Positions 14,001 through 62,495 of a DNA stretch of 64,000 nucleotides are shown piece after piece (position 1 is the first letter of the stretch; each line of letters starts with the position of its first letter). Source of the DNA: Epithemia pelagica (lineage: Eukaryota > Protista > Bacillariophyta); the NCBI GenBank assembly GCA_946965045.2, contig OX337238.1:62001-126000 (forward strand). Direction: 5' to 3'. The notes under the pieces are model-generated. The model did not search any database and was not told the origin of the DNA. It saw only the letters and a list, made by a program, of their open reading frames with translations. A program made the translations under genes and the position numbers.

Positions 14001-14701
14001 CTCTTCTTCTTGTCGTCGTCACTGTCGCTATCGCTGTCATCACTGTCACTGTCATCGCTGCTACTATCGTCGCTACTGCTGCTGCTATCGCTATCATCGT
14101 CACTGCTGTCACTGTCGTCGCTGTCTTTCTTTTTTCCACCCGATGCACCAGGACCGGCGCCATCATCTTCCATTTCGTCGTCTTCGTCCGGATTTTGCCG
14201 ATAGGCATTCATGACAACTTGATAGGCCTTGTTGTGTTTCTGCAGGGTCAACTTCATCTTGTTCAAGGCCCGTCCTTGTCGAGCACTGAGCGTTTTGAAT
14301 TGAGCCTTATCTTTGAGTCGTTCGGTATTGTAATCTTGCAATTGCACAAGAATCTTGACGAGCGGGCGCGGAATACCGGCCTTGAGGTATTGTTTGGCCT
14401 TGACCATGGCCTTGGCGAGTTTGTCAAATTCGGTTTGAATGCCATAATAATCTCGCTCTCGCATAAACTGCCGGAGCTGTCGAATGTGCAGTTGAAAGGT
14501 TTCCAGGGCGCGTTCTTTGCCCGATTTGACAACGCGTTGTTCGTCATCGCCACTCGATTCGGAATCGCTCATGGCCACCCATCGATTGCCACCACCACCC
14601 GTCGGACCCGGACCCGAATCCATCGAACTCGAATCGTCATCACTCGAGGCATCGTCCGAATCTGAATCGGAAGAATTGGCACCTGCCCAAAACCGAGACA
14701 T
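11031..14701 (-). CDS. EIF3C: Eukaryotic translation initiation factor 3 subunit C. Exons 14701-13943 and 13697-11031
   Basis: MSRFWAG start, acidic SD-rich N-terminus, RVVKSGKER, LKGRARWLK, ARDLLLMSHLQD, YNRMMVNLGLCAFRLG, PYHQHINLDLLE, FTGPPEQTRD, PCI region (VHSVVSKMMIQRELYASWDQ) and RGG-rich tail. Phase-0 intron 13942..13698 (GTACGT...TAG) restores one frame. Confidence 0.95.
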
Positions 14702-41183: not shown

Positions 41184-41993
41184 TTAATGTTCCACTTCCT
41201 GTCCCTCGTGAAAAAACCGCAAGGATTCCTGGTCACAGGCTTGGGGAGAAATACACACGACGGCACACGTATTGCCCTTGAGAAATTTATCGGCGACACA
41301 GGCTCGTTCTTTGCTGGGTACATGAATGAGCATGGACTGACAGGCGGGTCCATCGGTCGATCGACTTTGAATGCATCGAATATAGCCCGTCTCGCCGACA
41401 TGAACGACCAATTCGTGCCGCGGCAGGGCCAAACCGTCCGACTCGGGTTCGACAGGAATCGAACAGGATTGCGATCCAAAACAACTCAGCAGGGTATCGG
41501 TATAAATCGTGGCTTCCACACACGAGTGTTGGGCCAAGAGCGCCGCGCCTTGTCCACAATACACATCGTGCGAGGGTTCGGCAAAATGGGCTCGAATACA
41601 CGATCGGGTCCCTTGGCATTTGACCACTTCATTGTCGGCAAAGGCCGTATCGATACAGGATTCTTCCTCCTTGCAATACACCTCCTTGCAATGGGCAATC
41701 GTCCAGGCCTCACAGGACAAAAAGTCGTTGCAATGAAAGGCATCGCGAATGCGATCGTACGAGACGGAACCATCTTTGGGTAATTTTTCCAAATCGACCG
41801 GGGCGCCCATGCCATCCAATACTTGACACGAGACATTTCGAGTGGTGTTCTCGAGTTCCTTTTCTTCTTCGGGAGGAGACGACTGTTTCTTCTTCTTTTG
41901 AGCCTCGACCGTATCCAACCACGCCATGGAACAACCGAGTACCAGTAGCAGGAGGCACCAGGGCCACGATCGTTGGTGTCGGATTCGAATCAT
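41184..41993 (-). CDS. Secreted cysteine-rich 19-aa-repeat family member 2
   Basis: ATG at 41993, signal WPWCLLLLVLGCSMAWLDTVEA, family Cys scaffold, SHDVYCG, CAVVC..ACD..F. Confidence 0.85.
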   Translation of the reverse strand: MIRIRHQRSWPWCLLLLVLGCSMAWLDTVEAQKKKKQSSPPEEEKELENTTRNVSCQVLDGMGAPVDLEKLPKDGSVSYDRIRDAFHCNDFLSCEAWTIAHCKEVYCKEEESCIDTAFADNEVVKCQGTRSCIRAHFAEPSHDVYCGQGAALLAQHSCVEATIYTDTLLSCFGSQSCSIPVEPESDGLALPRHELVVHVGETGYIRCIQSRSTDGPACQSMLIHVPSKERACVADKFLKGNTCAVVCISPQACDQESLRFFHEGQEVEH

Positions 41994-42957
41994 TCTTTGG
42001 ATACAGGCAATATAGAGGTGGTGGCGATTGAAATATTGAATAGCTTCCACTTCCAGATTAGACAGCAAGTGGAACAAGTAAGTGTGTAGAGAAGAAGACG
42101 AAAGGCTTGAATAAGATTTTGTCGTTCTTCGTCGCCGACACGAGAGGAACTCTCGTTTCGATTGGTGCTCGTTCCATATCCATGGTGGATGACGACACAT
42201 GACGAAACAGATGTCGACGAGCGAAGAGCGACGAATCTCCATCCGGCGCAACCTGAGCGACTCAAACACGACTGTATTTTCTTTTAGATACTCCTAGCTA
42301 TCGCCTCTCTCGTTCGCCTCTAGCTAGTGGAGCCATAGAGTTGAGTCCAAGTATGGCCAGGAAGCAACCTGCCGACCACGGAACCACTTCCACACCACTC
42401 GGTTGCGGTCGTCCTATCTTTTTTTGGATGATGATTTTCTAAGTTTTGTTGTTAACTTCTAAAAAAGACGAATCTGATCCCTCGTCGTCGTGTGGATGGT
42501 AGTTGACCGTATCATGGTGTGTGCTGTTTCATTGGTTTCCCCCTTTTCTGTTATACTGTGTGTGATTTTTTGGAACGAAAATTTGCAGATCATAATATAC
42601 AAACGTGTGTGAACTGTACAAACAAGTGAATGGTTGGTCGATCGACACAACACACACACACACATGGGACAACCAAGAGCTGGTTTGCCGTATGCATGGT
42701 GTTTTTTTTTTTGAATACTAATTTCCCCCATGGACGTCCAGGACTGTCCTCCTCCTCCTTCTCATGATGACTCTTTGGTGATGACCACTCGAGCGACACA
42801 CACACGTGAGAGTGTCCACCCGCGAGCAGCATCGCAACCAACGGTGCCCCACACAGTGAGGAGGGACATGTCGTTGTGGTTTCTGGTCGCCCAGCAGTAG
42901 TAGATCCAACGAATCTAGCTCCTCTTGTCTTGTCTTGTTATTATTGTTGTTTGTTTG

Positions 42958-43725
42958 TTATTCCAACACAAAGGTAATGCCTTCCATATCGCAGGATCCA
43001 TCGTAGACACAGAGGACACTGCAGGGCGCTTCATTGTTGGATCGGCCTCGCATGGCGCGAATATCGGCCGCCCGCAAAAAGCAGGACCGGGCTCGCGAAT
43101 TGACATGGACAAACAATTTCGAACAGGCCTGGTCGTTAAAGGATCGGGTACATCGGACTTCGCCCTTGCCGCCGGCAAAGACCGTCATGCTGGATCGTTG
43201 CCATCCCGGTCCGGGCGGCGGCGTACAGGAATCCGTCCCATCGCACGAGACGAGTGTATCCGTTTCAATCGTGGAATCAATACAGGAATGATCGCCCACA
43301 CCACCGCCGCAATAGACATCGTGCGATTTGTAAAAATGCGTTCGTTGACAGGCCATGCTGCCGGTACAATAGACGGCTTCATTGTTGGTAAATTGAGCAA
43401 ATTTGCACGCGACATCGGCCTCGCAATGGACTTTGCGACAATTGCGAATGGTCCAATTTTCACAGGCCGATTTGATTTTGCACCGCAATTCGTCACTCGT
43501 GACATTGTACGACACTCCTCGAGGCATGCGAGACAAGGGTACCGCCTTGCCGGCACTGTCCTTCAACACACACGTCGCTTGCACCGTGGCTGGAGACCAA
43601 ACCGTCCATAATAGTAGCAACCATAGCCATGCCAAACGCAGGCATGACTTGGGAGGGGCCGACCATGACGTTGTTGAGTGCGTGTGGGAGGAGGAAGAGA
43701 ATCTGTGGGGTGAACACCGCTTCAT
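42958..43725 (-). CDS. Secreted cysteine-rich 19-aa-repeat family member 3
   Basis: Signal LAWLWLLLLWTVWSPATVQA; 18 Cys counted in the mature part. Confidence 0.88.
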   Translation of the reverse strand: MKRCSPHRFSSSSHTHSTTSWSAPPKSCLRLAWLWLLLLWTVWSPATVQATCVLKDSAGKAVPLSRMPRGVSYNVTSDELRCKIKSACENWTIRNCRKVHCEADVACKFAQFTNNEAVYCTGSMACQRTHFYKSHDVYCGGGVGDHSCIDSTIETDTLVSCDGTDSCTPPPGPGWQRSSMTVFAGGKGEVRCTRSFNDQACSKLFVHVNSRARSCFLRAADIRAMRGRSNNEAPCSVLCVYDGSCDMEGITFVLE

Positions 43726-44203
43726 GGTCTTGTTGGCGAGTCAATGAATTGACAGTAGGGATTTGCCTGGAATGAATCTAAGCTGTACTAGGTAGCGTTC
43801 GCTCTTTTGCTCTTGTGTAGGCTTGTCCAGGGAGTGATTCCACGTGCCAGTGCTCGTTTTCTGGAACGCTTCCGTCGTGGCCAGTAGGAACCTGTGCTTG
43901 TCCAACGGAGGAGGTGCAAGAATCCAACGGTATCGTCCTCGAGACGCTCCTCCTGTGGTTAGTTGTGTGGGCTCTCTCTAGGCTTTTGGAATCGAGTTGT
44001 TGTTGGTCGTTGCTGATTTATCAGCGGGAGAGAAGGTTGCAATACAATGTCCCAAATGGCAATGGAAAGATGTTCGACGAACACGCACCAACTGCAGCGA
44101 ATCTAATGTTGATGGATATGGAAGGAGGAGCAGCAACCGCGAAGATGATGATAGGCCAAAAGAAAAAGGAAAAAGGAAAAAGACATGATAGCTTTTTCCG
44201 TTC

Positions 44204-44293
44204 GACATGATACTACAAACTCTATAGTACATGGACCTTGTAAAATTAGACATCGTACTACAAACTCTATAGTACATGGACCTTGTAAAATGA
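44204..44293. repeat. 45-bp tandem duplication
   Basis: gacat..tactacaaactctatagtacatggaccttgtaaaat at 44204 and 44249. Confidence 0.85.
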
Positions 44294-44865
44294 CAAGAGC
44301 CTTCCGATTCTCTGGAATCTCTGTTCGATGGCATGTTGATTGGCTGATTCTGTGTCGCACCCTGGGATGATCCAGATGCCGTGGCGGTCATCCGGGAGTC
44401 AAAGTGCCGAGTGATTGGATCGTTCGTTCATGACGCACCAAAAACTACCCCCAAACGGACCGTTTCGTTGGATAGCTACTAGTAGAAAGGAAGGAGAGAT
44501 CGAGGAAATCCAAAAAGATGGGGAAACAAAGGGTAAAATAGACCACCGCAATGGATGGATCGATAGAAAGAGCAACAAAAAGTTATAAGAGTAGCAATTT
44601 GAGTTTTGGAGGGTCGGATTCGCAAGGCATTCGTTGGGAATGATAGTCATGGAGTACCACACATAGGGGTGTCGTACTTTCATTTTGTCGTCAAATGAAG
44701 AAACCATAGTCCCAGGTGGTACACCGGTTCCGGTGTGTCGTTGTGTTGTTTGTGGTGATGGAGGGTAGAGTGATCCATTCACTGTACCACTCCGTTGGTA
44801 GTCTTGTTGTTGTTGTTGGTGGTGGTGGTGCGCTGTTGCTGTTTGTAGTATTTGCATGGATTCTC

Positions 44866-45639
44866 TCATGTTTCAAATCGATCGTCGGGGGCAAATTTGA
44901 TGGAATCGCGATTGCAGGCCGTTTCATTGTTGGTACAAACAACGGCACAGGGTCCCTTGGGGCCGTACAGGTCCATGGAAAAACAGGCTCGTTCGGGTCG
45001 ATCGACAAAGACGACAATGGTTTCACAGGCCGGCAATTCATCGACCGTGGGGACACATCGGACATGACCCTGCGTTCCGGCATAGACATTGAGACCGCCG
45101 TATTTGGCACCAGGTGCCGCACAACTGTGCGAGCCATGACAGAGCACGACGGTATCGGTTTCAATCGTGGCATCGACACAACTCAAGGTGGAATGTTGTC
45201 CCCCACAATTGACATCGTGCGAATTCTTGAAATAGGCTTCTTGACAACTCCGCGAATGCCAACAATTGACAATTTCGTTTTGGTCCAATTCGGCACCCCG
45301 ACAGGATTCGACGCCGCGACACAGCACTTGATGACATTGGGCAATCGTAAAGCCTTGACAGGACCGGCCCTTGTCGCAACGAATTTCATCCTTGAAATTG
45401 TCATTGTTGACATAATAGACACCGTCGGGTAACTTGTCCAAGTCCAGTTGTTGGCCATTGTCATTCCATACTTGACACTTGGCGTGGACCTTGGTGAGAG
45501 TTGGGCCAAGGCAAACGACAACAAGGACAACTTGGAGGAGGATGATTTGCCAATAGCCTCTTGGTTGTTGTCGGTGCCGATAGGATCCAACAGAACGGCT
45601 CCCATTGTTCCTGCTTCTACTCGATTGCATTCGTAACAT
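44866..45639 (-). CDS. Secreted cysteine-rich 19-aa-repeat family member 4
   Basis: ATG at 45639, signal IILLQVVLVVVCLGPTLTKVHA, KCQVWNDNGQQLDLDKLPDGVYY...SHDVNCGG...PCAVVC...ACNRDSIKF. Confidence 0.85.
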   Translation of the reverse strand: MLRMQSSRSRNNGSRSVGSYRHRQQPRGYWQIILLQVVLVVVCLGPTLTKVHAKCQVWNDNGQQLDLDKLPDGVYYVNNDNFKDEIRCDKGRSCQGFTIAQCHQVLCRGVESCRGAELDQNEIVNCWHSRSCQEAYFKNSHDVNCGGQHSTLSCVDATIETDTVVLCHGSHSCAAPGAKYGGLNVYAGTQGHVRCVPTVDELPACETIVVFVDRPERACFSMDLYGPKGPCAVVCTNNETACNRDSIKFAPDDRFET

Positions 45640-46865
45640 GATGCTTCTTGAGGAGGAGAAGAATTCGGAATGCCCTGTAGAATTTCCTTCCAAACGGAAT
45701 CCAAGACACGTGATCGAAGTATGCGTTCTTTGAATTTGCCGACACTCACGCCAAGATTCCAAAAATGGATTGTGAGTATCTCTGGGATGCACAGCACGCC
45801 ACAGCGTCAGCCACACAGAACCTCGATCTGGTCGAGTCTTGAGGCTGTTCCGACAGCAGAACAAAACCAATCCGAACACGTGACACGTCATCAATTTACA
45901 TCATCTTGACGTCATATTTCACTTCACAGTTTTTGTCGGCCCTCCATTCCGACAAATCCAGAGCTCAGGATTTGTAGCCCGACAAATCCTGAAATAACAT
46001 TAGAGATAGTGTTATATTTATTCTAGTGTACATGTGGCATACAGAAACTTCCGCCAGGCGTTCTGGACTTCAGCGGCGCGCGTTCGACTCCAACGGTCCC
46101 CCAATCCCTAATGAAGAAGTCCGACTTTCGAATACTTTGGTATTCAATTCCACAGAGTACGTTTGGGGAGCGTTGGGGACCGAAGCGCGGTCTCTCGTTT
46201 TGGTTTTGGTTGTGCTCGAGGATCGAGGATGCGAAAACAGGCCAAATTTGCCAATACGTGCTAGACAAGAGGTAGTTGTAGGAACTGACCAAGAGAGCAA
46301 ACTGCTTGAGAGGAAATTATATCCATATCAGGAGTCTATCTGTTGCTGATTTGATGTCGATGACAAGATGAACCTGAAAGGAACTTTTCTGGAGATTTTC
46401 CATTCCGCCATCCGCTTCATGGGGATAATTCACCATAGGTAATCAATATTCTTTAGAGGTCCTGGCGGAAAGAAAGGTGAGGTTTCCCTCACTCTTCTCC
46501 TTATAATGATGACATACATCATTCCGCATGAGCTTTCTCTCATGTCTTTCATCTTCAATGGTCACGGACAGCTAAACTAGGTAGAGGAGTAGCCACAGAA
46601 TTTATGAAGGTCGAGGGTCGAGGGTCGAGGTGTCTAAAACGCGTCCAATCAGCGACCAAAATGTCACTGACCATGGTTAAGCCAAACTTGTTTTGGGAAC
46701 GAGAACCCCGCAGACTATGGACAACCACAAGAAAAGACACAACAAACTGTTGAAGTCCAAAAGTTGTTCCCAACTCTTCGTTCTATGTATACTCCGCAAT
46801 CATGACAACAGAAACAGACGGGTCACAAAATCGAGAACACTCATTTGAAGGGATATCAACAAATA

Positions 46866-48615
46866 ATGGTTCCACACGGCAATGAAGCGGATCCATTATC
46901 CATCTCAAATGGAACTGACTATGGTTCCAGTTTAAGTTCTGGAATGGATGATGATAGCATGACAGATCTCCTCGTTTCAAAGTCATCTGACGACTGTATT
47001 CAGAAGAGTAGGTTGATCATGTTGCCGTCCTGCGTTTATCCTACAAGATACTTGTCCCTCACCTATTCTTGCTTTCTCGAAATTAGAAGAGCCTGCAATT
47101 GGTATGTTGGGAAGCATCGCAATCGCTGTCAATTCGCTGGCTGGTCCGGCAATTCTGCAACTCCCATATCAATATCAACAGTCTGGGCTAATACCTACTA
47201 CGGTATGTGTCGTTTTCGTTGGGATTCTGTCTAGCTATTGCAGCTTGCACATGGCAAATGTGGTGTCGCAAGTTCCTGGGAACCATGACTTTCGTCAAAC
47301 AGTGGAATTCTCAGATCCATTCCGCCTGTTTTGGAACAAATCGGCCTACAACATAACGCAAGTTCTCTTTTTCCTTTGTGCCACCTGCACGAATGTTGCG
47401 GCTATTGTTGATACATCGGAAATGGTTGATTCATTCCTTGGATTTCATTTTCGATCCGTTGGTTTCAATTTTGATGATTTTGCTTTCCAGACATGGTCAC
47501 ATCCTCCATGTTCAAGAAGGGAAGTCAAACAAGGAGTGTGCGAACCATTTGGCGATGGAATGATTTATGGAGACCATATGCTAACATTGGGCTACGTCAT
47601 AACAGCGGTTGTCTTCCTTCCTGTCTGCCTCATGGATCTCAAAGAAAGTGCAATATGGCAAATATAATGATTCACAGTTCTACTGAGTATCTCTGTATAC
47701 TTTTGCCTGGTGTTCTCCGCGGGGGATCTTTCATTGGATCGAGTTTCCTGGTGGGGGCACCAATGGGGAGAAATGTTTGGGGTAATTCTTTTCAATTTCG
47801 GTCTGGTACTTGCCGTCCCGGCTTGGCTTCATGACAAAAAACACAGTGTCTCGGTCAACAAAGTTGTGTATAGAAGTACAACCATCTCGGCGAGTCTATA
47901 CGTAGCTGTGGGTGCTTTGGGTGCCCTCGCAATTCCGAATGTTAATGTGAATATGTTGAATCCAATGATTTCAGGAGCCTTCGGTCCTGGGATTCAATAT
48001 GCAGCCAGTCTCTTTGCGTTCTTCATCATCGGACTGGATATACCGCTTTTCTGCGTCCTTACACGGTACAATCTTACTCACTCTGGTCTCTGCAGTGAGT
48101 GGACTGCAAACCTGATTGTGGTGTGGATCCCATGGTTCACATCTTGGCTACTTTATCAGGGTGATTCCATCGGCGAACTTCTTGATTGGAGTGGCGTTTT
48201 GCTCACATCGGCTATTGCATTCATTCTCCCTCTCTACCTTGCGCTTCGAATTCTTGTCACAACCGACCAGGAAGGTTCAGTCCACATCTATGGGATGCCG
48301 GTGAGCAGAGATCGTCAGATATGGTACCTATATGGAACACTATTCATCGCGTCATGTGCGGTTCTTGCTGCAATTGGAGGACAATTGTCCACGGTACGAG
48401 ACACGCCAGTGTATGAAGATCCGATGGAGTATGAAAATTCCACTCTCTTTTCTAAAGTTCTGGAGCACAACACGCAACACGAGCATCATCATCACCATCA
48501 TCACCACCGCCACAACAAATCGATCCTTCCTGTATTAGACGTTTCAGTGGATGACCAGAATTCCTCTCATTCCCTCTGTCCTATTCTCAACGACACCCAA
48601 ACTTTAGGACTGTAA
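46866..48615 (+). pseudogene. Amino acid/auxin permease (Aa_trans-like) transporter interrupted by adjacent in-frame TAA TGA. Exons 46866-47007 and 47087-48615
   Basis: 79-nt intron 47008..47086 gives QK|KEPAIGMLGSIAIAVNSLAGPAILQLP. Multiple TM segments; FNFGLVLAVPAWLHDKK; LIGLDIPLF. Stops at 47665-47670 with the same frame continuing (FTVLLSISVYF). His-rich C-terminus. Confidence 0.75.
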
Positions 48616-48876
48616 CATTTCAATTCCTGCTATAGATAGTCATTAACGTTATAGAAGAAGCCCAGCAACGATACTTCGATCAATTGTTTGCCTTGCTTGG
48701 GATCTCATGCTTCGTTGATGGTTGAAACGTTGGTATCAATAGTGGCAGGGATCGATGGGTGATGCCTTTCCCTTCAAAGAGAAGCAGAGTATCAATAACT
48801 CAGTTCTTACTAATACATGTTGTCCATATTAAACTTTGTCACAACGGCAACACAGTAGATAGTTGTGTGGGATTTG

Positions 48877-49236
48877 CTACACCAGAATCGGAGTCATGGT
48901 AATGTTGTCAACAAACAAATCCCAATCGGAGTCAAAGCCTCGGAAGCCGAACAAGAAATTGCTCCCAAGTGCCATGTCGTCGGAGATAGCAACAACACTC
49001 TCAAACTTGTTGAACTCCTCAGATTGATTTTGTCGTGCTGTCGGAACGGCCTGAGTGTGTAGGTTGTAGCATTTGTGATCACCTCGGCGACAGAGAAAAC
49101 CAGAAGGAGGAGGATCCATGTTATAGTTTGTGTGGAGCCATAACGATCCAATTGGATCTTCGACTTGCGTGCCACAGATTAGCTTCGAACGGCGACATTC
49201 CACGTCCAATCGAAACCCGACACAGTCACAAGTCAC
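48877..49236 (-). pseudogene. C-terminal gene fragment, possibly a carbohydrate-binding (CBM4/9-like) beta-sandwich
   Basis: EFNKFESVVAISDDMALGSNFLFGFRGFDSDWDLFVDNITMTP resembles the end of CBM4/9-type domains; no intact upstream gene. Confidence 0.25.
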
Positions 49237-49767
49237 AACCGACGCCCTACAGCCCTTCCATCCGGGACTGATGAGTCACGAATCATCGGCTGAGTCACGG
49301 GAGAGTCGACAGTCGACCATTCTAACTTCAAGAACTTTGGTGCATCATAGCCCACGTTCCTCCGACGACCATGATGTCAATCGTGGGGGGAACGGTAGTT
49401 CTTTGGTTGTGAAGAATCTATTCGTTGGAGAATACTATTGTTACGAGGAGAGGCGATGAAAACCTGCGCCGTCCATAGTTACGAGGAACGTCAAGAGGAC
49501 TTTTGTCCTTGTTTGGTGGTTGTGTTGTTTTGTCGTTTGGGGAGTGCAATAGCAATAATCTAACGTGTCGTCTTGAATGATAAGAATCGGTTGTAAGAAA
49601 GATTTGGGTAGAGCGTAGTATGTAGAGAGTGCATTGATTTGAGGGAGCAGAGTGCTCTCTTCTTCTGGATGTTTGCTGTTTGTAGGGTCTTGATTATTTT
49701 GTCCATTGGTTCTGTTGTGGTTTGAATTCTATGTACTGTTGTTGCCTTGTGTGCAATGTTGTTGTTG

Positions 49768-50526
49768 TTATTTGTTGCTGACCAAAAAGATGATGGTACT
49801 CAAATCGCAGGATTCGGGTGCGAGACAGACGAGGGCACAGGGACTATTCTGGAGGGTGGTATGGGTTTGACAGGCCCGTTTCTTGTCGGGGACACGAATG
49901 TACATGGATTGACAAGCGACGCCATCGCCGGTATCGTGGGCACACAAGACAGAGCCGGATTTGCCCACGGAAATCATGGGACTCCCATCGCCAATGTCGC
50001 GATTGCGTTCGGCCTCCAAGACTTGTTCCGGCGTTAATTCTTGCGACAATTCCAACGGCGGGGGTCCGCCCGGTAAGGTACAGGAATGGGACCCATGACA
50101 ATGCAAGAGAGTGTCGGTTTCCACGACCGTGTCGACACAGGCATGGGGTGGATCGCCGCACACGACATCGTGCGATTCGTAAAAGGAGGCGCGATGACAC
50201 GCATTCGTGGCTTGACACTTGACTTGTTCGTTGAAGCGAAAGACCGTGTTGAGACAGGCATGGTTGGTCGAACACACAACCTTGTTGCAATTGTGAATCG
50301 TCCAACCTTCGCAAGACGACCACAGATTGCACGTCAATTCATCCTTTTGGACATTGTACCAGACCCCACGGGGCAATTTCTTGAGCGATACCACCTTTTG
50401 GTTGCGATCCCACACTTCGCACTCGGCCGATACCAAGGGAGATGGAACCAACACCAAAAGGGTAGTGGTGGCCGTAAAGAGGACAAATCGAAGACGTTGC
50501 CAGAGGGGAAGGGATGTTCGAGGCAT
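49768..50526 (-). CDS. Secreted cysteine-rich 19-aa-repeat family member 5
   Basis: Signal FVLFTATTTLLVLVPSPLVSA; 18 Cys counted in the mature part. Confidence 0.88.
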   Translation of the reverse strand: MPRTSLPLWQRLRFVLFTATTTLLVLVPSPLVSAECEVWDRNQKVVSLKKLPRGVWYNVQKDELTCNLWSSCEGWTIHNCNKVVCSTNHACLNTVFRFNEQVKCQATNACHRASFYESHDVVCGDPPHACVDTVVETDTLLHCHGSHSCTLPGGPPPLELSQELTPEQVLEAERNRDIGDGSPMISVGKSGSVLCAHDTGDGVACQSMYIRVPDKKRACQTHTTLQNSPCALVCLAPESCDLSTIIFLVSNK

Positions 50527-51327
50527 GAGGATTGGTGATTGTTGGATTGATTAATTGATTGAGACTACAGTCTTTGTTGGGTGAGTTTGTGTTGTCAAAG
50601 AATCGGTCCGTCCGTCTTTGTTCGAGTTCTCCTTTCGCTTTGTGATGTCGACAAAGCGAAGAGTCGTCTAGAATAATACAAAGGGCTCAATGAACAATGG
50701 AGCTGACGGTTCTGGGAATGATGACACACAAGAGGAGAAGCACGGAGAGTAACTGCAATAGGGGCAGCCCTTATCAGACGCGAAGCAGATGGAACTGGAA
50801 CGCGAGAAAAGTTGTGTCAGGTCGAAGAAAAATGAGAGAGAGAGCTGTCCATGATGAAAGTGCGTGGTCGTCCGTCGGTCGTCTCATCAACCGACGCGCG
50901 TGTGTGAAGTTGGATCCAAGAAGACCATGTGGTCCGACGAATCTTGGGTTGTGCGACCAAAGCCAGGCCGGTGCTCTGTCGCAGGGGGAGCCACACGATC
51001 TTGGACTCTTCAAGCATTGTCATAAAGTCTCCAAGTCTCTCGACAGGTTCATCTAGAATCCAGCAAGTGGAAGCATAAATTTAAGAAAAAGCAGAGAGAG
51101 GGGATAACGAGTTGTATTCTAGATTCACTCTAGTTACGTATCGTAGGGAATCCTCCTCCTAGTAGTAGTAAAACTTGTGCTTGTTCGTGTGTGTGCGTGT
51201 GTGTGTCTATCATTGGTGTGTGTCGTTGTTGTTCTTGGTTTGGTTTTGTGTCTGTTTGTGTAATGACGACGCTCCATCCTTGGTCGTAAAAGTCCATCTT
51301 GTACTAGTATTCGTAGTAGTATTCTTC

Positions 51328-52197
51328 TCATGTCAAGACGAATCGAATCGTCTTCTTGTCACAAGATCCCGGAGAAATACAGGCCACGGCACAGGGCGTG
51401 TCATCCAACCAGCCCGTTTCGGCCAAACAGGCTCGTTTGCGATTGGGAACATGGACGGCCATGTTGCGACAGGCGGCCGACACGTTATTGTTGGTATGGG
51501 TATAATTAAAGTGAATCGCCGAATGGTCCATGGTTGGAGTGGGATGCGTACATCGAATGTACCCCGTCAAGCCGACATGGGCCACCAGAGAGGGTCGAAT
51601 GACGCGGCGTTTCTTGTTGCTGCTGGACGACAGGGCATCGCTGCGTTTTTGATGCTCCGCGGCAGCGGCCAACTCGGGAGGCCAGGCACAGGCATGGGCG
51701 CCTTGACAACTAATCATGGTATTGCTGTGAATGGTGGCATGCAAACAGGATTGGGGTGGACCAGTGCCGCCGCCATTGTTACCGCCCGAAGTCGATCCAC
51801 AAAAGACATCGTGCGAGGCGACAAATTTGGCATCGAGACAGGCCTGGGAGGCACCGCATTTGACGACTTGATTGTCGTGCAGGGTGGCATTGCGACAGGA
51901 TTGCGACAAACTGCAATCGACCAAGCGACAGGTGGCAATCGTCCAGGCAAAACAAGATTTGAATTGACCACAGGTCAATTCGTCGCGTTGGGCATTGTAC
52001 AGGACACCGGATGGCAAGGGTTTGGCCAAATCCAATTGTTGACCGGCACCATTGCGGACTTGACAGGCCGCCTCAACCCAAAGGGGGACGCTGAAAGTCC
52101 TACCAAGAAGGAGTAGTATCACCACCACAACAGCAGAGAAGAGAGGAGAACCAACCACAGAGAAGGAGGAATGCCATGATGGTCCAAGTCTCTGCAT
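51328..52197 (-). CDS. Secreted cysteine-rich 19-aa-repeat family member 6
   Basis: ATG at 52197, signal AVVVVILLLLGRTFSVPLWVEA, family scaffold with Gly-rich and basic loop insertions. Confidence 0.85.
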   Translation of the reverse strand: MQRLGPSWHSSFSVVGSPLFSAVVVVILLLLGRTFSVPLWVEAACQVRNGAGQQLDLAKPLPSGVLYNAQRDELTCGQFKSCFAWTIATCRLVDCSLSQSCRNATLHDNQVVKCGASQACLDAKFVASHDVFCGSTSGGNNGGGTGPPQSCLHATIHSNTMISCQGAHACAWPPELAAAAEHQKRSDALSSSSNKKRRVIRPSLVAHVGLTGYIRCTHPTPTMDHSAIHFNYTHTNNNVSAACRNMAVHVPNRKRACLAETGWLDDTPCAVACISPGSCDKKTIRFVLT

Positions 52198-52709
52198 GGC
52201 CACCAGTTGGTTCGTTGTTCGTGGATTCCTCGTTTCTCCTCGTCGTCGTTTGGATGCATCTTGCCACAACCACCGAAAAAGGACGAAAAGCTGATATCTC
52301 CAACAAAAGATCCTTCGGTGCCAGCAGTCACCGACACCACCGCATTTGCAGATCTTTCTGTGAGGGAACCGACCGAAAAAAATCTTCCAATGGGGGACAT
52401 CCACATCTCGTTGGGCCGGATGGCCGACTGCAGAGTTTGCAGTCTGCTTTCGGGATTCTCAACGTTCTCTTCTTTACGAGCGACCAAAAAAGGTTAGATG
52501 GACAGACCTTTTCGAATCCGGTGACGGACAGACCATGTAGTACTTCGAGGATCTTCCAAAGATATGGTTTTCTGTTTTCTGTTCCATTCCAGGTCAACGT
52601 CATGTCCGACTAGGTTGTCCTCGTCATACGAGCACTACCTAGAAAGACCATTGATACGGCAACACAAGGAGACGAAGAAGAAACACAAATAAGAAGAAGA
52701 AGAAGAAGA

Positions 52710-53471
52710 ATGCTGCATCGACTGGCAGTGTGGTTACTCTTCTTCTTTTGTTCGGCACACTGCCTGACGTTGTCGTGGGCGAAATGTGACCTGTTGGATA
52801 CGAATCGCAATCCGGTATCCTTACAAAATTTGCCAGACGGCGTTCGCTACGACGATGCCTCGGACACCTTGTATTGTATGGAACCCTTGGCCTGTGAGGC
52901 TTGGACGATTCACGACTGTCGCATGGTGTCGTGTCAAAATTACGAAGCCTGTTTGGATGGCATTTTTCAATCCAACGAGGTGGTCCATTGTCGCGCCACT
53001 CGCGCCTGCCATCGCGCCGTCTTTTACCGATCGCACGATGTCGTCTGTGGAACCGGTGGAGAAGTCCCTTCGGTATCTTCGACGCGCAGCGATCGTCAAA
53101 AGGCGGTCGCCCGCTATGCCTGTGTCGATTCGACCGTGGAATCCGATAGCATTGTGCATTGTCGAGGAGCCTTATCCTGTACCTTGCCCGGTGGGAAACC
53201 ACGCGATGACCATACCGGGACGGAGCAAGTCCATTTGGGATGGGAACTCATTGTCTATTTGGTCAGTGATGCGGCTCATGTCTATTGCGATTTGGAATCG
53301 CGCAGTACGGCAAGCATTGGACCGGCCTGTCAAGCCATGCGGATTCATGTCAAGGATGAATCGCGAGCCTGTTTTGCCGAAGCGTCGTGGGTGGCCGAGA
53401 ATCCCTGTGCCGTCATTTGTGCCACGTTCGAAGCGTGTGATTCGGAAAATATTAAATTTGTGGTCGATTGA
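52710..53471 (+). CDS. Secreted cysteine-rich 19-aa-repeat family member 7 (inverted, head-to-head with member 6)
   Basis: Signal LAVWLLFFFCSAHCLTLSWA; 18 Cys counted in the mature part. Confidence 0.88.
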   Translation: MLHRLAVWLLFFFCSAHCLTLSWAKCDLLDTNRNPVSLQNLPDGVRYDDASDTLYCMEPLACEAWTIHDCRMVSCQNYEACLDGIFQSNEVVHCRATRACHRAVFYRSHDVVCGTGGEVPSVSSTRSDRQKAVARYACVDSTVESDSIVHCRGALSCTLPGGKPRDDHTGTEQVHLGWELIVYLVSDAAHVYCDLESRSTASIGPACQAMRIHVKDESRACFAEASWVAENPCAVICATFEACDSENIKFVVD

Positions 53472-55144: not shown

Positions 55145-58100
55145 ATGTTGCGCTCTTGGCGAAGCCATCGTCGCAATCGCAATGCGAGCAGTGCGTCCTC
55201 GGTCACATCCCTACCGACGAGCACCTCCTCCACGAGAAGCAGTAGCCGCACTTCTTCCAAACGAACCAAGAGGAGAAACAGCAGTAACACCAAATCGTCG
55301 TCGACACCCTCCTCTCCCTCGTCTTCGGCTGCAGCAGGAGCCTTTCCACAACCTGTTGCGGGAGCCTTTCCAACGACCTATCCGCGCGACGACTACAATG
55401 AAGAGGATGATAGTGTCAGTTTGAGCAGTCGACTCAGTTGCCGATCCACCAAGAGTCATGCACGAAAACAGCGCCTCTGGACTCCCACACGACGGTCCCA
55501 CAAACACAACAAAAAGCAACAGCAACAACCACAAGAGCAACAGGATTTGACCAATTCGCCCACTCACAGTCATGGCGATGATCCTGAGAATCCTCCGGCA
55601 TCGCCGTCCGTGTCGTCCGTCGCCACGGCACACACGCAACCATCCCTGCGACAACCACGAACCAGTACCAGCAGCGTTCTCAAGCAACCAACAGTGTCGT
55701 CATCTTCTCCCGATTCCGTGGCCACCAACAAATCGAAACGCAGTGTGCGGTTTGCCACACACACCACGTCTTCGTCGGAGGATGCCGGATCGGTAGCCTC
55801 GGCACCGGCTCAATTGTGGTCCACCACCAAGAATAAGCAGTCACGTCGATCCACCCAATCGTCTTCCAAAAAATCCAGTCCCTGGCGATTGGGAGGAGGC
55901 CGCAAAGGAGGACGATCGTCCTATCAAGAAGTACCGGCAGAAGCGTCTTCGTCTTCCTCAAAGTCTACGACGTCTCCATCGACTACTACTAGTAGTAGTA
56001 GTAGTACTCCCAAAGATTCGGCCTTGACCCAATACTTGAGGCAAAATGCGGCCTCCTTGCAACAAGCCCAAGAGGAAAAGAACTTGGTCACGACGGGCTC
56101 TCGCAAACCTCCATTGAAACCCATGGTCGTGGAAGACGATGCCCTCAGTGTGACTTCGGTCAAGAGTGGCAGCTCCAAGGGCAGCACTTCCAGCAACAAG
56201 AATTCGCTCACGGTTCCACCCATTCGCATTCAAAGTGTCATGACCAGCTCGTCCTTGGACTTGCCCGATCATCAACCACAATCGGAAGAAGACAGCAGCA
56301 GCAAGGATTTTTCTGATAGCGATACGGCTTCCGCGTCACTAGAGCCAGAAGGTAACCAACCAACCAAGAAGCAACATGCCTCGTTGGATTGGACGTTGGA
56401 CCTACCACAGGACCACGACGACAAGTCGAACAACAACAACAAGAAGAAGGACAATCACATGAAACCCTTATTGGTGGTACCAGCGACCAAACCAACGGCC
56501 TTGATTCCTCCGTACGACCAACCCAAGCACGAAAACGACAACGAAAAGGACGACCACAAGACACCCTATTTGGTACAACCATCCCCGGACCAACACCAAG
56601 ACACGACAGACAACCAAAACAAAGACGCGAAAGGAGGTGAAGAAGATGCCTTGGAATCCTCACTCATTCCTCCACCCGTCTTGTCCAAACTCACCAACCA
56701 TGCGACCAGCACCACTCCACCATCCTCCTCCACAACCATAACAACCAGTGAGTCCATTCGGACCTGGTCGACACAATTGGCGTCGATTCCTCACTCCACC
56801 AAAAAAGAGGAGGACGACGAAGAGGATGATGATCACGCGTCGGCCGTTTCCTTTGCGTCGGCTGCTTCGGCCCTCAACAAGTATGGCTTGGTTCGTATTT
56901 TGGACGATTCCGAATCCGAAGATGAGGTCATGTACATTCACAAACGATCCTATTCCAGTAGTTCCGACAATGATGATGACGACGACGATGATGATGAGAC
57001 TACCACGGATGGAGAAGAATCCCTCTTGCTCTTGTTATCACCCGACAAGGACCGTCCCTCGGACCAGGAAATAGGCGAGTTTTCGACGGAAGAGAAAAAG
57101 GAGGAAGAGCGAATGGTACCCTCACCGGGTTTCCGAGGTTCGCCCCACCGAAGACGCATGCCCAATCGAACCATTCAAGGATCCTCCTCTTCCTCCAAGA
57201 CGACAGGATCGTCCCCGCCCCGGCTCATGAAACGACTCTTGGGTGGTGGAAAATCCAAAAAGAAGCAACAACCACAAGCCAACAAGCGGGCCCTGCTGGG
57301 ATACCAGCCTTTGCAATCGCCTCCAACGTCCGATGACGAACAAGACGAAGTGGCCGCCAAGACTCCCATGTTGTTGTTGGCAACGGCTAGTAACAACAAT
57401 AACAACGGTCCTTTGTCCATGGGTGGTGCAACGAGTAGTGGCAGCAGTCCGACCCAATTCCTGAGCAGTCCTCGCAAAATGAGTCGCAAACACCCAGCAA
57501 ATACGACCACCACAACAACAACGACGGGCATCAGCACGGTACAAGCACTCTTGATGAAAGAGGGCGGACCGGAATGGACGCAAGTTCCCACCTTTGCGCC
57601 AGCCGCAGCGTCCGCCTCGTTGGCTGGCAGTGGATCTCCCCCAAGCTTACAGCAGCAGAAACAGCAATGGGATCCCTTTGCGGTCGCACCTCCTCTGAAA
57701 CAAACACCTCCCTCGGATCAATTTTGGTTTCCGGCCACAACGGCATCGTCCACGTCTTCTCCCACGTCGGTTTCGTCTCAATCCAGTCCCCCCAGCAACA
57801 ACAACAACAACAACAACCACAAGGCAGTGCAAGGTGTAATGTCAGCTTCGTTCTCCTCGTCTCCTTCGTCCATGTCCTCGGCCACTCCCACACGCATCAC
57901 CAAGGAAAGGACCGCACTGGAGGACTCTGCTGCTGCTGTTACTACTACCACGGTCCGAAAAAACACGAGCAGTCCCTTGTCACCTCTTCCCGGTACGAAC
58001 GAAAATGAGTCCTTTGAAACCTTTGTTACGGCCATGGGCCATGCCGACGATGATGACGAAGAAGAAATCATGATGGAATCCACAGTTCAAACGGACAAGT

Positions 58101-60073
58101 CACTTAGCGAATCGCCACGAACCACCAACGCCACCATTCTGAATCACCGGTCTCTGACTGTCTTGTCCTCCGCGGATAACGAGGCTTCGAGTCCAGACAC
58201 TACAAGCAGTGACGACTCTTCTGCCAACCATCCATGGGCCGAGACCATGGTCACCTCGTGCTTTGTCGGAATGGGAGCGACACCGCTCTTGCTCGTGTTG
58301 GGGTACCGCAATGTCCTCAATGATTTGGTCCTCCTGCAAGGTGCAAGTTATTGGAGATACTCCCTCTTGGTCTTGTGCAGTGCCTTTACGTCCCTTTCCT
58401 GTACGGCCTTGATTTGGAGTTCCATGTCCATGGGACGGAACTTGTTGTCGCGTGATGATACCAATAATGACGGGACCGACTCGACGAGAAACCCATTGAC
58501 ACAGTCGCCCCAACGTCCTACGACTCGTCCCAAGACCACCACAACCACTACCTCCACCGTGACTGGTTTGGAACCCACCGCCTTGTGGAGACAACAAGAT
58601 CGGTTGCAACAAAGGTTGGACCGCCACAAGGCACAAGAGGCAACTTACAAGTCTCGGTTGTTGGCCTTGCAAGCCAAGGAACGGTTGTTGCAACGACGTA
58701 CCAAGTTAATGCAATCCATTAAAGATGTCGAATTGGAAATTCAACGACGACAACACGAACAAGTCATTTGGTCGACCGTACAACTCATTGTTCACGAACA
58801 CAAGCGCTCCCTGAAACAGCAAGAAACGAGCCGTGCAAACAGTGGAATGCCGAAAACGACCAAATCTCGCAGTGGTTGGCGTGCCACCTTGCAGCAGTTG
58901 TCGGATCAAGGCAGTGTCAATAGCAAAGATGACGATGGGAATGCCAGTGTCCAATCGGCCCATTCCGGACGATCGGCACAATCAGCTCTCTCGACACGAT
59001 CCATGCCGGCCTTGTTTTCGCGATCGGGAGGGAGTCATCATCGAGGTACTGGTCGTCGAAGGATGGCCGCGCCAATGACACAAGAAGAAGAACCAGTCCC
59101 ACCACGACGCCGCCGTACTCAACGACGCAATTCTGTAGTCATTTTGGATCACCAAACAGAGAGCAGTACACCTGCTAGTACGGCCTTGGCCAAGACTTCC
59201 TCGGCACTGGCTGCTCTGGAATCTCAAAGCGCGGCAGGAGGAGAGCAACCAAAAGAACCCGTGTCAACAAGCAATAGGAGTCAACAACCACAAGAAGAAG
59301 AACAACAACCAGTCGTCCCATCACCACCACCACCACGTCGTGCGCAACGGCGCAATTCCGTAGTCATTTTGGATCACCAAACCGAGGGCAGTGCACCTGA
59401 TAGTACGCCCTTGGCCAAGGCAGCCGCAGGACTAGCGGCTCTTCCAAGCGCAGCAGGACGAGAGCAACGAGAAGAACCTGTGCCTACAGCTGTGAATCCG
59501 ACGCATCGACCGATTGCGGCTCATGTTCCCTTGAACGAAATGGCCATTCAATGGCTCTTTCAACGATGGATGAAAATCCCCGGTGTTACAGTGCTCCAAC
59601 AAAACTCGGATGCCGATCCGCTATCCAATTCTCCTCCTTCCTCTTCTTCTTTGTTTGTTACTTCCAGCAGGACGACCCCAAAGGCCGCCTGGACGGTCAC
59701 CGATTTGTTGCGTCTCACCAAGGATCCGGATCAACTCCAATATCGACGACCTGCATTGACAGCGACACCCCAAGGCTCTCCTACCGGAGACGTGTTGTTA
59801 TCACCCTCCACAACCGTTCAACAAGCCACGCAACAAAAACAAGAACGTCAAGAAGATGCAGATAACGAAGAAGACGAAGAAGAAGACGGCGAGGATGTGG
59901 ACAGTGACGAAAGCGTGTCTTCCTCCCATTCTCCCGACAGTTTCGACAAGGAAGGCGAGGACGATTCCGAAGACGATGACGAGTCACCGATTCTCGAAGT
60001 ACCAGCCTCCTTGAAAACAGGCCGAACGACCACGGCCCGACGACCGGCTTCGTTAGGTATGGGTGAGTTTTAA
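55145..60073 (+). CDS. Large (1642 aa) low-complexity Ser/Thr-rich protein with 2-3 hydrophobic segments and a coiled coil; function unknown
   Basis: Single uninterrupted 4.9-kb ORF. Hydrophobic block (SCFVGMGATPLLLVLG...YSLLVLCSAFTSLSCTALIW), coiled coil (LWRQQDRLQQRL...ELEIQRR), duplicated PPRR..QRRNSVVILDHQTE motif. Confidence 0.75.
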   Translation: MLRSWRSHRRNRNASSASSVTSLPTSTSSTRSSSRTSSKRTKRRNSSNTKSSSTPSSPSSSAAAGAFPQPVAGAFPTTYPRDDYNEEDDSVSLSSRLSCRSTKSHARKQRLWTPTRRSHKHNKKQQQQPQEQQDLTNSPTHSHGDDPENPPASPSVSSVATAHTQPSLRQPRTSTSSVLKQPTVSSSSPDSVATNKSKRSVRFATHTTSSSEDAGSVASAPAQLWSTTKNKQSRRSTQSSSKKSSPWRLGGGRKGGRSSYQEVPAEASSSSSKSTTSPSTTTSSSSSTPKDSALTQYLRQNAASLQQAQEEKNLVTTGSRKPPLKPMVVEDDALSVTSVKSGSSKGSTSSNKNSLTVPPIRIQSVMTSSSLDLPDHQPQSEEDSSSKDFSDSDTASASLEPEGNQPTKKQHASLDWTLDLPQDHDDKSNNNNKKKDNHMKPLLVVPATKPTALIPPYDQPKHENDNEKDDHKTPYLVQPSPDQHQDTTDNQNKDAKGGEEDALESSLIPPPVLSKLTNHATSTTPPSSSTTITTSESIRTWSTQLASIPHSTKKEEDDEEDDDHASAVSFASAASALNKYGLVRILDDSESEDEVMYIHKRSYSSSSDNDDDDDDDDETTTDGEESLLLLLSPDKDRPSDQEIGEFSTEEKKEEERMVPSPGFRGSPHRRRMPNRTIQGSSSSSKTTGSSPPRLMKRLLGGGKSKKKQQPQANKRALLGYQPLQSPPTSDDEQDEVAAKTPMLLLATASNNNNNGPLSMGGATSSGSSPTQFLSSPRKMSRKHPANTTTTTTTTGISTVQALLMKEGGPEWTQVPTFAPAAASASLAGSGSPPSLQQQKQQWDPFAVAPPLKQTPPSDQFWFPATTASSTSSPTSVSSQSSPPSNNNNNNNHKAVQGVMSASFSSSPSSMSSATPTRITKERTALEDSAAAVTTTTVRKNTSSPLSPLPGTNENESFETFVTAMGHADDDDEEEIMMESTVQTDKSLSESPRTTNATILNHRSLTVLSSADNEASSPDTTSSDDSSANHPWAETMVTSCFVGMGATPLLLVLGYRNVLNDLVLLQGASYWRYSLLVLCSAFTSLSCTALIWSSMSMGRNLLSRDDTNNDGTDSTRNPLTQSPQRPTTRPKTTTTTTSTVTGLEPTALWRQQDRLQQRLDRHKAQEATYKSRLLALQAKERLLQRRTKLMQSIKDVELEIQRRQHEQVIWSTVQLIVHEHKRSLKQQETSRANSGMPKTTKSRSGWRATLQQLSDQGSVNSKDDDGNASVQSAHSGRSAQSALSTRSMPALFSRSGGSHHRGTGRRRMAAPMTQEEEPVPPRRRRTQRRNSVVILDHQTESSTPASTALAKTSSALAALESQSAAGGEQPKEPVSTSNRSQQPQEEEQQPVVPSPPPPRRAQRRNSVVILDHQTEGSAPDSTPLAKAAAGLAALPSAAGREQREEPVPTAVNPTHRPIAAHVPLNEMAIQWLFQRWMKIPGVTVLQQNSDADPLSNSPPSSSSLFVTSSRTTPKAAWTVTDLLRLTKDPDQLQYRRPALTATPQGSPTGDVLLSPSTTVQQATQQKQERQEDADNEEDEEEDGEDVDSDESVSSSHSPDSFDKEGEDDSEDDDESPILEVPASLKTGRTTTARRPASLGMGEF

Positions 60074-61403: not shown

Positions 61404-62495
61404 ATGTCTGCTCCTACCGAAGCCAAACAACGTCGTCCCATTAGTACTGTCGGAGACGATGAATCTACGACTACTGCTCCCATTATTCCGTCTTCGTACA
61501 AGGCTACCAAGGCTCCGAAAGATACCTTGTTTACCTTGTACAAGGTGTCCCAATACAAGGCGAGTTTGCCCATGAATTTGTTGATTGTCCAATCCGTCAT
61601 GGCCGGTATTTACGTTGCCATGGCCGGACACTTGTACTTGGCGGTCGGCGCCGGTGTCTTGGGCGCAGCCGTCTTTCCCACTGGTTTGATCGCCGTGGTC
61701 TTGACTTCGGCCGAACTCTTTACCGGGGATACCCTCGTCTTTATGGCGGCCATTTTGGGCGGTCACGTGTCGTTGGAAAAATTGGTGCGCAATTGGTGCG
61801 TGTCGTGGGTCTTTAATTTTTTTGGATGCATTGTGTGGGCCAGTATTATCACGTACGCCAGCGATGCCTTGGAAGATGCCGGACAAGTCGACTTGGCCAT
61901 CCAAATTGCCGAAAAAAAGGCCTTGCAACCGTGGATGCATATTTTCTTGAAAGCGATTGGGGCCAATTTCATGGTGTGTTTGGCCGTGTGGCAATCCACC
62001 TGTGCCGAAGATGTGGCCGGCAAAGTCTTGGCCATTTGGTTTCCCATTTCTGGCTTTATTTTGATTGGCTTGGAGCACGTGATTGCCAATCAATTCTTGA
62101 TTCCCACCGGTATGATGTATGCCGGTGCGGCCGGCAAGATTTCCGTCGGTCAATTGTTGTGTGCCCTTTCCGCCGCCACCTTGGGCAATATGGTGGGCGG
62201 TGGCCTACTCGTCGGGGCCGTGTACTGGTATATCAATGACTCCATGGCCACATCCGCCAGTTCCAGTGACCCGCCTCAACCCTTGGGCGTGCGATTGCGT
62301 CAAGCCATGATTGCCTTTTCCAAAAGCAGTTCCAATCGTGGTGGTGGTGAATCCTCTTCGGCGGCTGCGGCTGCCCGCAAGGGCGAAAAGGTGACGTTGG
62401 AAGATGTCAATGAAGAAACGGAACCCTTGGCTCCGGCTTCGGGAGAAGGAGGGTCCAGCAAACCCGCGGCCGCGACGGTGGATCGTATTGTCTAA
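61404..62495 (+). CDS. Formate/nitrite transporter (FNT family, NAR1/NirC/FocA-like)
   Basis: SVMAGIYVAMAG, FPTGLIAVVLTSAELFTGD, LVRNWCVSWVFNFFG, KAIGANFMVCLAVW, AGKVLAIWFPISGFILIGLEHVIAN, TLGNMVGG. No obvious bipartite plastid presequence. Confidence 0.93.
   Translation: MSAPTEAKQRRPISTVGDDESTTTAPIIPSSYKATKAPKDTLFTLYKVSQYKASLPMNLLIVQSVMAGIYVAMAGHLYLAVGAGVLGAAVFPTGLIAVVLTSAELFTGDTLVFMAAILGGHVSLEKLVRNWCVSWVFNFFGCIVWASIITYASDALEDAGQVDLAIQIAEKKALQPWMHIFLKAIGANFMVCLAVWQSTCAEDVAGKVLAIWFPISGFILIGLEHVIANQFLIPTGMMYAGAAGKISVGQLLCALSAATLGNMVGGGLLVGAVYWYINDSMATSASSSDPPQPLGVRLRQAMIAFSKSSSNRGGGESSSAAAAARKGEKVTLEDVNEETEPLAPASGEGGSSKPAAATVDRIV

Follow-up and report, generated by a model that had tools for sequence, protein, structure and literature searches.

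The stretch analysed here, a window of 64,000 nucleotides from the diatom Epithemia pelagica (contig OX337238.1 of assembly GCA_946965045.2, positions 62,001 to 126,000 of the forward strand), carries a family of genes for cysteine-rich, probably secreted proteins, designated w1 to w7. The listing of open reading frames (ORFs), together with tblastn searches using each member, identified seven related loci in the window and no more. Six of them are clustered at 41.2-53.5 kb of the window, five on the minus strand and one on the plus strand, and the seventh, w7, lies apart from the cluster at 6.7-7.8 kb. The six clustered members detect one another with pairwise tblastn E values of 1e-28 to 1e-45, and w7 matches them with values of 1e-8 to 1e-14. 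All seven are uninterrupted, intronless ORFs, each encoding a leader and a single domain, and were found at the same coordinates as in a preliminary description of the locus; that description had also taken the paralogues to be long maintained, with which the integrity of every ORF agrees.

Within the array, w1 (41184-41993, minus strand) encodes 269 residues counted from the Met at 41993, in an ORF that is open to 42269, and displays a Lys/Glu-rich N-terminal extension of 24 residues after a V-E-A site. It is followed by w2 (42958-43725, minus; 255 residues), from which the preliminary example of a 19-residue period was drawn and to which protein P0001 on the ENA contig ERZ21939226:ctg1203l is 99% identical, and by w3 (44866-45639, minus; 257 residues counted from the Met at 45639). 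The product of w4 (49768-50526, minus; 252 residues) was selected for modelling. In w5 (51328-52197, minus; 289 residues) the loops that follow C123 and C149 are long, and its product is among the few basic proteins of the family, with a mature isoelectric point (pI) of 8.7; w6 (52710-53471; 253 residues) is alone within the array in lying on the plus strand. The outlying w7 (6712-7818, minus), 368 residues as the longest ORF, keeps the 18 invariant cysteines and has a Pro-rich, acidic insertion ahead of the rung equivalent to the SHDV-containing one, as well as an acidic C-terminal tail.

Searching the whole assembly (60.5 Mb in 23 sequences) in six frames revealed 14 family members, all intact and all on the chromosome that holds the window, so that the original count of seven stands for the window and is half of the genome total. 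Five copies are located at 48-58 kb of the chromosome, just upstream of the window, w7 at 69 kb, w1-w6 at 103-115 kb and the last two copies at 2.32 and 2.35 Mb. The chromosome begins with a CCCTAA telomere repeat of about 550 bp (positions 1-555), which makes the 12-gene array at 48-116 kb subtelomeric.

Alignment of the 14 genome copies revealed 18 invariant cysteines common to all, and each mature domain contains exactly 18; colinearity of the cysteines, originally counted in three members, thus extends to the complete set. Across species, exactly 18 cysteines are found in the mature part of 65 of 73 members. Their spacing is nearly fixed, C-x29-36-C-x5-C-x7-C-x4-C-x5-C-x12-C-x5-C-x12(+)-C-x6-24-C-x12-C-x5-C, then C-x13-C and finally C-x3-C-x5-C. 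The proposed 19-residue period is real: three perfect units are followed by further, looser ones, and the rung consensus is C-x4-[SA]-C-x2-[AW]-T-[IFL]-x5-V-x. Variation in length, which had been thought to be confined to two loops, is found at no fewer than four or five positions (C123-C130, C149-C195, C195-C205 and C219-C230, with C110-C123 also variable in w7 and one upstream copy). The C-x5-C pairs probably staple one beta-arc per rung, with nine disulfides in total, as judged from their spacing. Mature proteins encoded in the window are 203-292 residues long and, in the family, mostly acidic (median pI 5.6). At the N-terminus, 8-13 of 14 residues are hydrophobic, and this stretch terminates in V-x-A one residue ahead of the first invariant cysteine, as would be expected for a signal-peptidase site. 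Since the N-termini resemble signal peptides, the proteins are probably secreted, as had been supposed. No hydrophobic C-terminal tail was found among the aligned genome copies, and the proteins stop 2-8 residues beyond the last predicted strand of the helix described below.

The AlphaFold2 model of w4, built with a 14-sequence alignment, has a mean predicted local distance difference test score (pLDDT) of 87, with core values of at least 95. That of the E. clementina homologue Ec_g12982, built with a 73-sequence alignment, reaches 90.8, with 95-98 across the whole mature domain. In both models short strands recur every 19 residues and the leader forms a lone N-terminal helix, in keeping with its assignment as a signal peptide, and the long variable loops depart from the beta-helix and are of low model confidence. 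The beta-solenoid anticipated from the repeat alone is thus predicted with confidence. A Foldseek search against the PDB returned no match at E <= 0.001, although the weak rows were all beta-solenoids, so that the structural comparison suggested at the outset gave the expected class of fold without a significant hit. With an exhaustive structural aligner, all 50 top rows were beta-solenoids, namely parallel beta-helices. The best match was the TibA adhesin (Z 11.0, root-mean-square deviation 2.7 over 124 residues), bactofilin also scored highly (Z 9.0-9.8, 2.2 over 103 residues), and EtpA, Ag43, HxuA, pectate and alginate lyases, pentapeptide-repeat proteins and CAP/RP2 domains ranked lower. 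Sequence identity to these structures is 4-15%, and the scores of the models show a common architecture, not kinship.

The likeness to the autotransporter adhesins TibA, Ag43 and AIDA-I and to bactofilin lies in the same right-handed three-sided helix with about 18-19 residues per turn. TibA and bactofilin are 9-11% identical in sequence to the Epithemia proteins, are bacterial and are not stapled by disulfides. Autotransporters carry a C-terminal outer-membrane barrel, whereas the Epithemia proteins have neither a barrel nor an autotransporter Pfam match, and bactofilin is cytoplasmic and polymerizes; the resemblance to all of them is architectural only. Searches of the ESM Atlas by structure gave generic bacterial beta-helix models (template modelling scores of 0.4-0.5) and nothing else, and those by features scored no higher than 0.80 and were uninformative. 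On the evidence of the two models, the family is a confidently predicted disulfide-stapled eukaryotic beta-helix without a solved relative.

A C-x5-C pair within a short-period beta-helix resembles the beetle antifreeze protein TmAFP, and the preliminary description had listed ice binding and biomineralization among the conceivable functions. Ice-binding, antifreeze or silica-scaffold proteins are nevertheless a highly improbable identity for this family. Antifreeze proteins of the TmAFP type combine a T-x-T ladder with a cold habitat, whereas the rung consensus lacks such a ladder, the period is 19 residues and not 12, and E. pelagica comes from the tropical and subtropical open ocean. The sole ice-related structure among the matches listed stood at rank 50, with Z 6.8. 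The composition of silica-associated proteins, rich in Lys, Ser and Pro or of strongly acidic low complexity, is likewise lacking, except in the loop insertions of a few copies, and the proposal of a biomineral protein finds no support.

No Pfam family scored above threshold with the seven window proteins or with the 73 family members, in agreement with the initial impression that no named family is involved. The closest entry, DUF7640 (PF24646), was matched within the window by w7 alone (16.2 bits, E 0.013, against a gathering threshold of 28.1 bits) and weakly by 7 of the 73 members, with a best E of 1.3e-5. A sequence search of the PDB gave no match, and a word-indexed protein search returned two near-identical proteins only. 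These blanks are attributable to the method, since an exhaustive hidden Markov model (HMM) search with a profile of the 14 E. pelagica copies against 1.84 billion representatives produced 533 matches at E <= 0.001. The matches form two tiers, between which the score drops in a step and the architecture changes. The first comprises 57 full-length proteins of 170-380 residues with E < 1e-30, and all those that could be traced come from three Epithemia sources: E. clementina, with its ACA910 loci at NCBI, E. adnata, through Logan contigs of SRR25945676 (PMC11131595), and a pelagica-like source, represented by ENA assemblies whose DNA is about 90-96% identical to that of the window. Among traceable full-length relatives, the 18-cysteine architecture is therefore seen only in Epithemia.

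The second tier consists mostly of long proteins with several blocks, matched over the rung region only, one of them from the foraminiferan Nonionella stella. DUF7640 and unnamed cysteine-rich multi-repeat proteins of Foraminifera and other protists have the rung motif C-x5-C-x12-13 in common with the Epithemia family, whose profile matches such multi-repeat proteins over the rung region at E 1e-29 to 1e-9. On the other hand, DUF7640 proteins are often long and composed of several repeat blocks, unlike the Epithemia family, and the C-terminal half with C-x13-C and C-x3-C-x5-C belongs to the latter and not to DUF7640, which is, on these comparisons, a weak, remote relative. An intermediate family (P0089, P0094, P0123 and P0145), from protists of IMG sample 3300017329 and of SRR24908316, has the leader, the N-terminal cap and rungs one to three in common with the Epithemia family (hhalign probability 98.9%, E 1e-17), but its cysteine-rich C-terminal half is unlike that of the Epithemia proteins. 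A word-indexed search with P0094 found only itself, and the C-terminal hydrophobic stretch of this protein resembles a membrane anchor. The rung motif is thus part of a wider, undescribed protist superfamily. No mention of DUF7640 and no description of Epithemia proteins as cysteine-rich was found in the literature.

Epithemia diatoms carry nitrogen-fixing cyanobacterial endosymbionts, the diazoplasts, and the family could be linked to published proteomics on them. Diazoplasts were purified from E. clementina and analysed by density-gradient proteomics (Frail et al., PNAS 2025, PMC12377750), and host-encoded proteins with a significant enrichment in diazoplasts numbered 6 of 1727 (PMC12377750). 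Three of the six, Ec_g12982, Ec_g13000 and Ec_g24166/Ec_g03819, belong to the orthogroup OG0000250 (PMC12377750), which is common to the two Epithemia genomes only (Frail et al., PMC12377750). Its candidates lacked a domain, a BLAST match or a targeting extension and were called 'enigmatic' (PMC12377750). The same authors could not maintain cultures of E. pelagica (PMC12377750).

The two data sets were connected by comparing the molecular weights in Table S4 (bioRxiv 10.1101/2024.08.27.609708), to all five printed digits, with E. clementina sequences. Thirteen family proteins match rows of the table exactly in weight, with colinear gene order: Ec_g13000 (P0031, ACA910_011203; 29.941 kDa), Ec_g13004 (P0014, ACA910_011207; 24.972 kDa), Ec_g12999 (the ORF adjoining P0031; 24.416 kDa), Ec_g12982 (L040:5121-5855, 245 residues with 18 cysteines; 27.003 kDa), Ec_g13007 (L035:17660-18457; 29.24 kDa), Ec_g13011 (P0020; 27.952 kDa), Ec_g13018 (P0036; 31.708 kDa), Ec_g13024 (P0038; 22.141 kDa), Ec_g13031 (P0042; 26.832 kDa), Ec_g13034 (P0055; 25.206 kDa), Ec_g00109 (P0047; 24.535 kDa), Ec_g21549/00115 (P0158; 31.084 kDa) and Ec_g21553/00118 (P0045; 28.364 kDa). 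The Ec_g and ACA910 numbers differ by 1797 for both Ec_g13000 and Ec_g13004, with drift only at merged pairs of identical genes, and positions along contig JBGMNV010000076.1 climb in the same order as the Ec_g numbers. In BLASTP comparisons w4 aligned over the whole domain, with every cysteine in register, to both Ec_g12982 (31% identity, E 2e-30) and Ec_g13000 (30%, E 2e-27), and the 14-copy E. pelagica profile finds these two proteins at E of about 1e-49 to 1e-54. Two of the three published candidates are hence directly demonstrated members, and the family is therefore the orthogroup OG0000250. For the third, Ec_g24166/Ec_g03819 (23.256 kDa), no sequence match was obtained and membership follows from the orthogroup statement of the paper alone. 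The E. pelagica genes are, then, not orphans and form the E. pelagica arm of a published yet undescribed orthogroup. The paper covers three members, without fold, signal peptide or cysteine pattern; at least 13 are present in the diazoplast fraction of its own table, and the E. pelagica copies form a clade with a subset of those from E. clementina.

All 13 family rows have an intensity-based absolute quantification (iBAQ) signal in isolated diazoplasts, compared with 26 of 145 other host rows taken from 2 of the 40 parts of Table S4 (Fisher p 2e-9), and the summed diazoplast signal equals or exceeds the whole-cell signal in 11 of the 13, against 7 of the 145 (Fisher p 8e-11). Further rows from the same two gene neighbourhoods, counted as six of 21-32 kDa or as seven of 21-28 kDa (Ec_g12971, 13006/13005, 13012, 13019, 13025, 13033/13032 and 00119/21554), also with diazoplast signal, are probably more family members, and Ec_g13033/13032 is strongly enriched in isolated diazoplasts. 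The preliminary description had regarded a lack of expression as grounds for abandoning its proposal; at least 13 members are detected as protein, in the sister species. According to a review, the host-derived membrane is lost when diazoplasts are isolated, so that any protein retained on them must at the least have passed through it.

These observations are best accommodated, with a probability that we put at about 0.55, by soluble, secreted proteins of beta-helix fold that reach the compartment surrounding the nitrogen-fixing endosymbiont, a localization that we infer. The leader would take the protein into the endoplasmic reticulum, where nine disulfides, mostly C-x5-C staples over one beta-arc per rung, would lock the helix, and vesicles would then bring it to the interior of the host-derived compartment around the cyanobacterium. 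There, the rigid, mostly acidic helix could use its flat faces and variable loops to bind the surface of the endosymbiont, tightly enough to outlast the loss of the host membrane during purification. Such proteins might act as a coat, a tether, a spacer or a surface-recognition set, and not as a membrane-attacking peptide. Restriction of the family to Epithemia, together with co-purification of its E. clementina members and the endosymbiont, points to a role related to symbiosis rather than to the functions listed previously.

Several points weigh against this localization. It relies on one density-gradient data set from another species and on the E. clementina members instead of the E. pelagica genes themselves, with a background drawn from two parts of the table. 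Non-specific enrichment was not excluded by the authors of the proteomic study (PMC12377750), and a sticky, disulfide-rich secreted protein could bind cyanobacterial surfaces exposed after breakage. Several members are also found in the whole-cell lysate, where 2 of the 13 are more abundant. The leader was read from hydrophobicity and the V-x-A pattern, and the disulfide pairing from spacing, so that both are predictions. Finally, in a maximum-likelihood tree of the 73 members, which resolves three well-supported clades, all E. pelagica copies fall into one clade, and Ec_g12982 and Ec_g13000 sit in the other two, devoid of E. pelagica members. This last objection is tempered by Ec_g13004, Ec_g13018 and Ec_g13024, which are detected in the diazoplast fraction and share the E. 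pelagica clade.

A rival reading is that of ordinary extracellular proteins of a raphid diatom, from the cell surface, mucilage or adhesive trail, that contaminate the diazoplast fraction through post-lysis binding, wall fragments or vesicles. A signal peptide, many disulfides, the absence of a membrane anchor and an expanding subtelomeric array are typical of surface and secreted families, bacterial adhesins and beta-helices active on polysaccharides are closest in structure, and the abundance of some members in the whole-cell lysate, as well as the authors' caution regarding non-specific enrichment (PMC12377750), are readily understood in these terms. Host proteins are, however, generally absent from the diazoplast fraction, as reflected in the 6 of 1727 significantly enriched, and only 18% of the other rows sampled have any diazoplast signal, which therefore indicates no general carry-over of secretory or wall proteins. 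The confinement of the family to an endosymbiont-bearing genus also speaks against such a function. The general absence of host proteins argues against blanket contamination, and specific post-lysis sticking remains the main rival; overall, an extracellular origin of this kind is possible but rather unlikely.

The tree is also informative about the history of the family. The six array members w1-w6 constitute a subclade found in E. pelagica only, which indicates local tandem expansion, and w7 groups with the upstream copies and with E. clementina ACA910_011232. The three clades indicate that several subfamilies are older than the split between E. pelagica and E. clementina, which has been placed near the origin of the symbiosis (PMC12377750).

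Selection was assessed by comparing orthologues with an ENA contig of a close relative that covers the six-gene array and in which the proportion of synonymous differences (pS) in neighbouring genes is 0.14-0.16. The ratio of non-synonymous to synonymous substitution (dN/dS) in the w1-w6 pairs is 0.06-0.11 (w1 0.06, w2 0.06, w3 0.09, w5 0.07 and w6 0.08), with 116.5 synonymous and 32.5 non-synonymous differences and a dN/dS of 0.08 when the six pairs are pooled; two flanking genes of undefined function have higher values, 0.19 and 0.36. Amino-acid changes affect 0.6% of core, 3.7% of loop and 4.3% of leader positions. The loops change about six times faster than the core, yet still far below the synonymous rate, and are thus relaxed, not positively selected. 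Indeed, no positive selection was found in the w1-w6 orthologue pairs, and purifying selection takes the place of the diversifying evolution first proposed. Among paralogues, which are about 35% identical, divergence is too great for a meaningful site test.

This mode of evolution bears on the idea that the proteins are secreted effectors for defence or for binding bacteria, of a lectin-like or antimicrobial kind, directed against environmental bacteria and attaching to the endosymbiont envelope after breakage. Expanded families of cysteine-rich secreted proteins often serve as immune effectors, many proteins that bind carbohydrates or cell surfaces have a beta-helix fold, and cultures of these diatoms contain many bacteria. 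The strong purifying selection on each orthologue, however, gives no sign of an arms race, the mature proteins, with their median pI of 5.6, are mostly acidic, unlike cationic antimicrobial peptides, and the Pfam scans detected no catalytic or lectin family, all of which renders a defence function improbable.

Comparison with other host-made, symbiosis-associated proteins leads in the same direction. The legume NCR peptides, the aphid BCR peptides and the short chromatophore-targeted proteins of Paulinella are likewise encoded by the host, lineage-specific and expanded, with a signal peptide and conserved cysteines, and the likeness includes a bacterial endosymbiont in a host-derived compartment, the association of the Epithemia family being one of co-purification in a sister species. 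Peptides of the NCR and BCR type, however, contain 35-110 residues and 4-8 cysteines and are often cationic and antimicrobial, whereas the Epithemia proteins, of 200-290 residues, are about five times larger, with 18 cysteines, mostly acidic and predicted to be beta-helical. For a molecule of this size, charge and fold, an action on membranes and the mechanism of an antimicrobial peptide are therefore unlikely.

An unrelated amino-acid transporter gene (47104-48615, plus strand) lies between the third and fourth array members. It corresponds to PF01490, by the gene call on the sister contig L015, and is probably split over two ORFs in the window by an intron. The transporter is near-identical in the window and on L015, with 5 differences in 1464 nt (pS 0-0.016), in contrast to flanking genes with pS of 0.06-0.26 and intergenic DNA that is 90-96% identical; extreme constraint, recent conversion or introgression could account for this. 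No amino-acid transporter is found inside the E. clementina array, where a 676-residue gene is unrelated. Downstream of the E. pelagica array, a 1642-residue ORF (55145-60073, plus strand) is very rich in Ser, Thr and Pro, with acidic runs and two near-repeated blocks ('RRAQRRNSVVILDHQTE'), and a formate/nitrite transporter gene (PF01226, E 7e-64; 61404-62495, plus strand) is located 8 kb from the array. The position of a nitrogen-related transporter beside a symbiosis-linked array may well be a coincidence. The gene for eIF3 subunit c (11031-14701, minus strand) occupies two adjacent ORFs, 13613-14701 and 11031-13616, which would fit a short intron or a change of frame and indicates that not every gene in this region is intronless. 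In E. clementina, the nuclear contig JBGMNV010000076.1 carries a gene with a bacterial solute-binding domain (PF00496, SBP_bac_5; L040:13286-15165) about 2.6 kb from a family member and three genes from Ec_g12982, and this gene may belong to those that Epithemia is reported to have acquired horizontally.

Epithemia is a leading model for a nitrogen-fixing bacterium becoming an organelle, and a published surprise was that hardly any host protein reaches the diazoplast. While the observations and the structural inference of the preliminary description held, most of its functional suggestions did not, and what is added here is the anatomy of the family, its predicted fold, its subtelomeric arrays and its family-wide enrichment in published data. 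Half of the six import candidates fall into one family, for whose members a signal peptide, a rigid beta-helix and, probably, nine disulfides are predicted, and the whole tandem family, not three proteins alone, behaves alike in the authors' table. In the marine E. pelagica the family is present, intact and strongly constrained. The route suggested by these features is secretory delivery into the host-derived compartment and not translocation across bacterial membranes, and the family also provides candidate markers for the compartment around the diazoplast. As a more tentative and still doubtful proposal, the proteins may represent a new class of host-made, endosymbiont-directed proteins that arose in the Epithemia lineage and that, supplied through the secretory pathway, coat or tether the cyanobacterium inside its vacuole. 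If so, host control of this young 'nitrogen organelle' would be external, exerted through a structural surface layer instead of through protein import or antimicrobial peptides.

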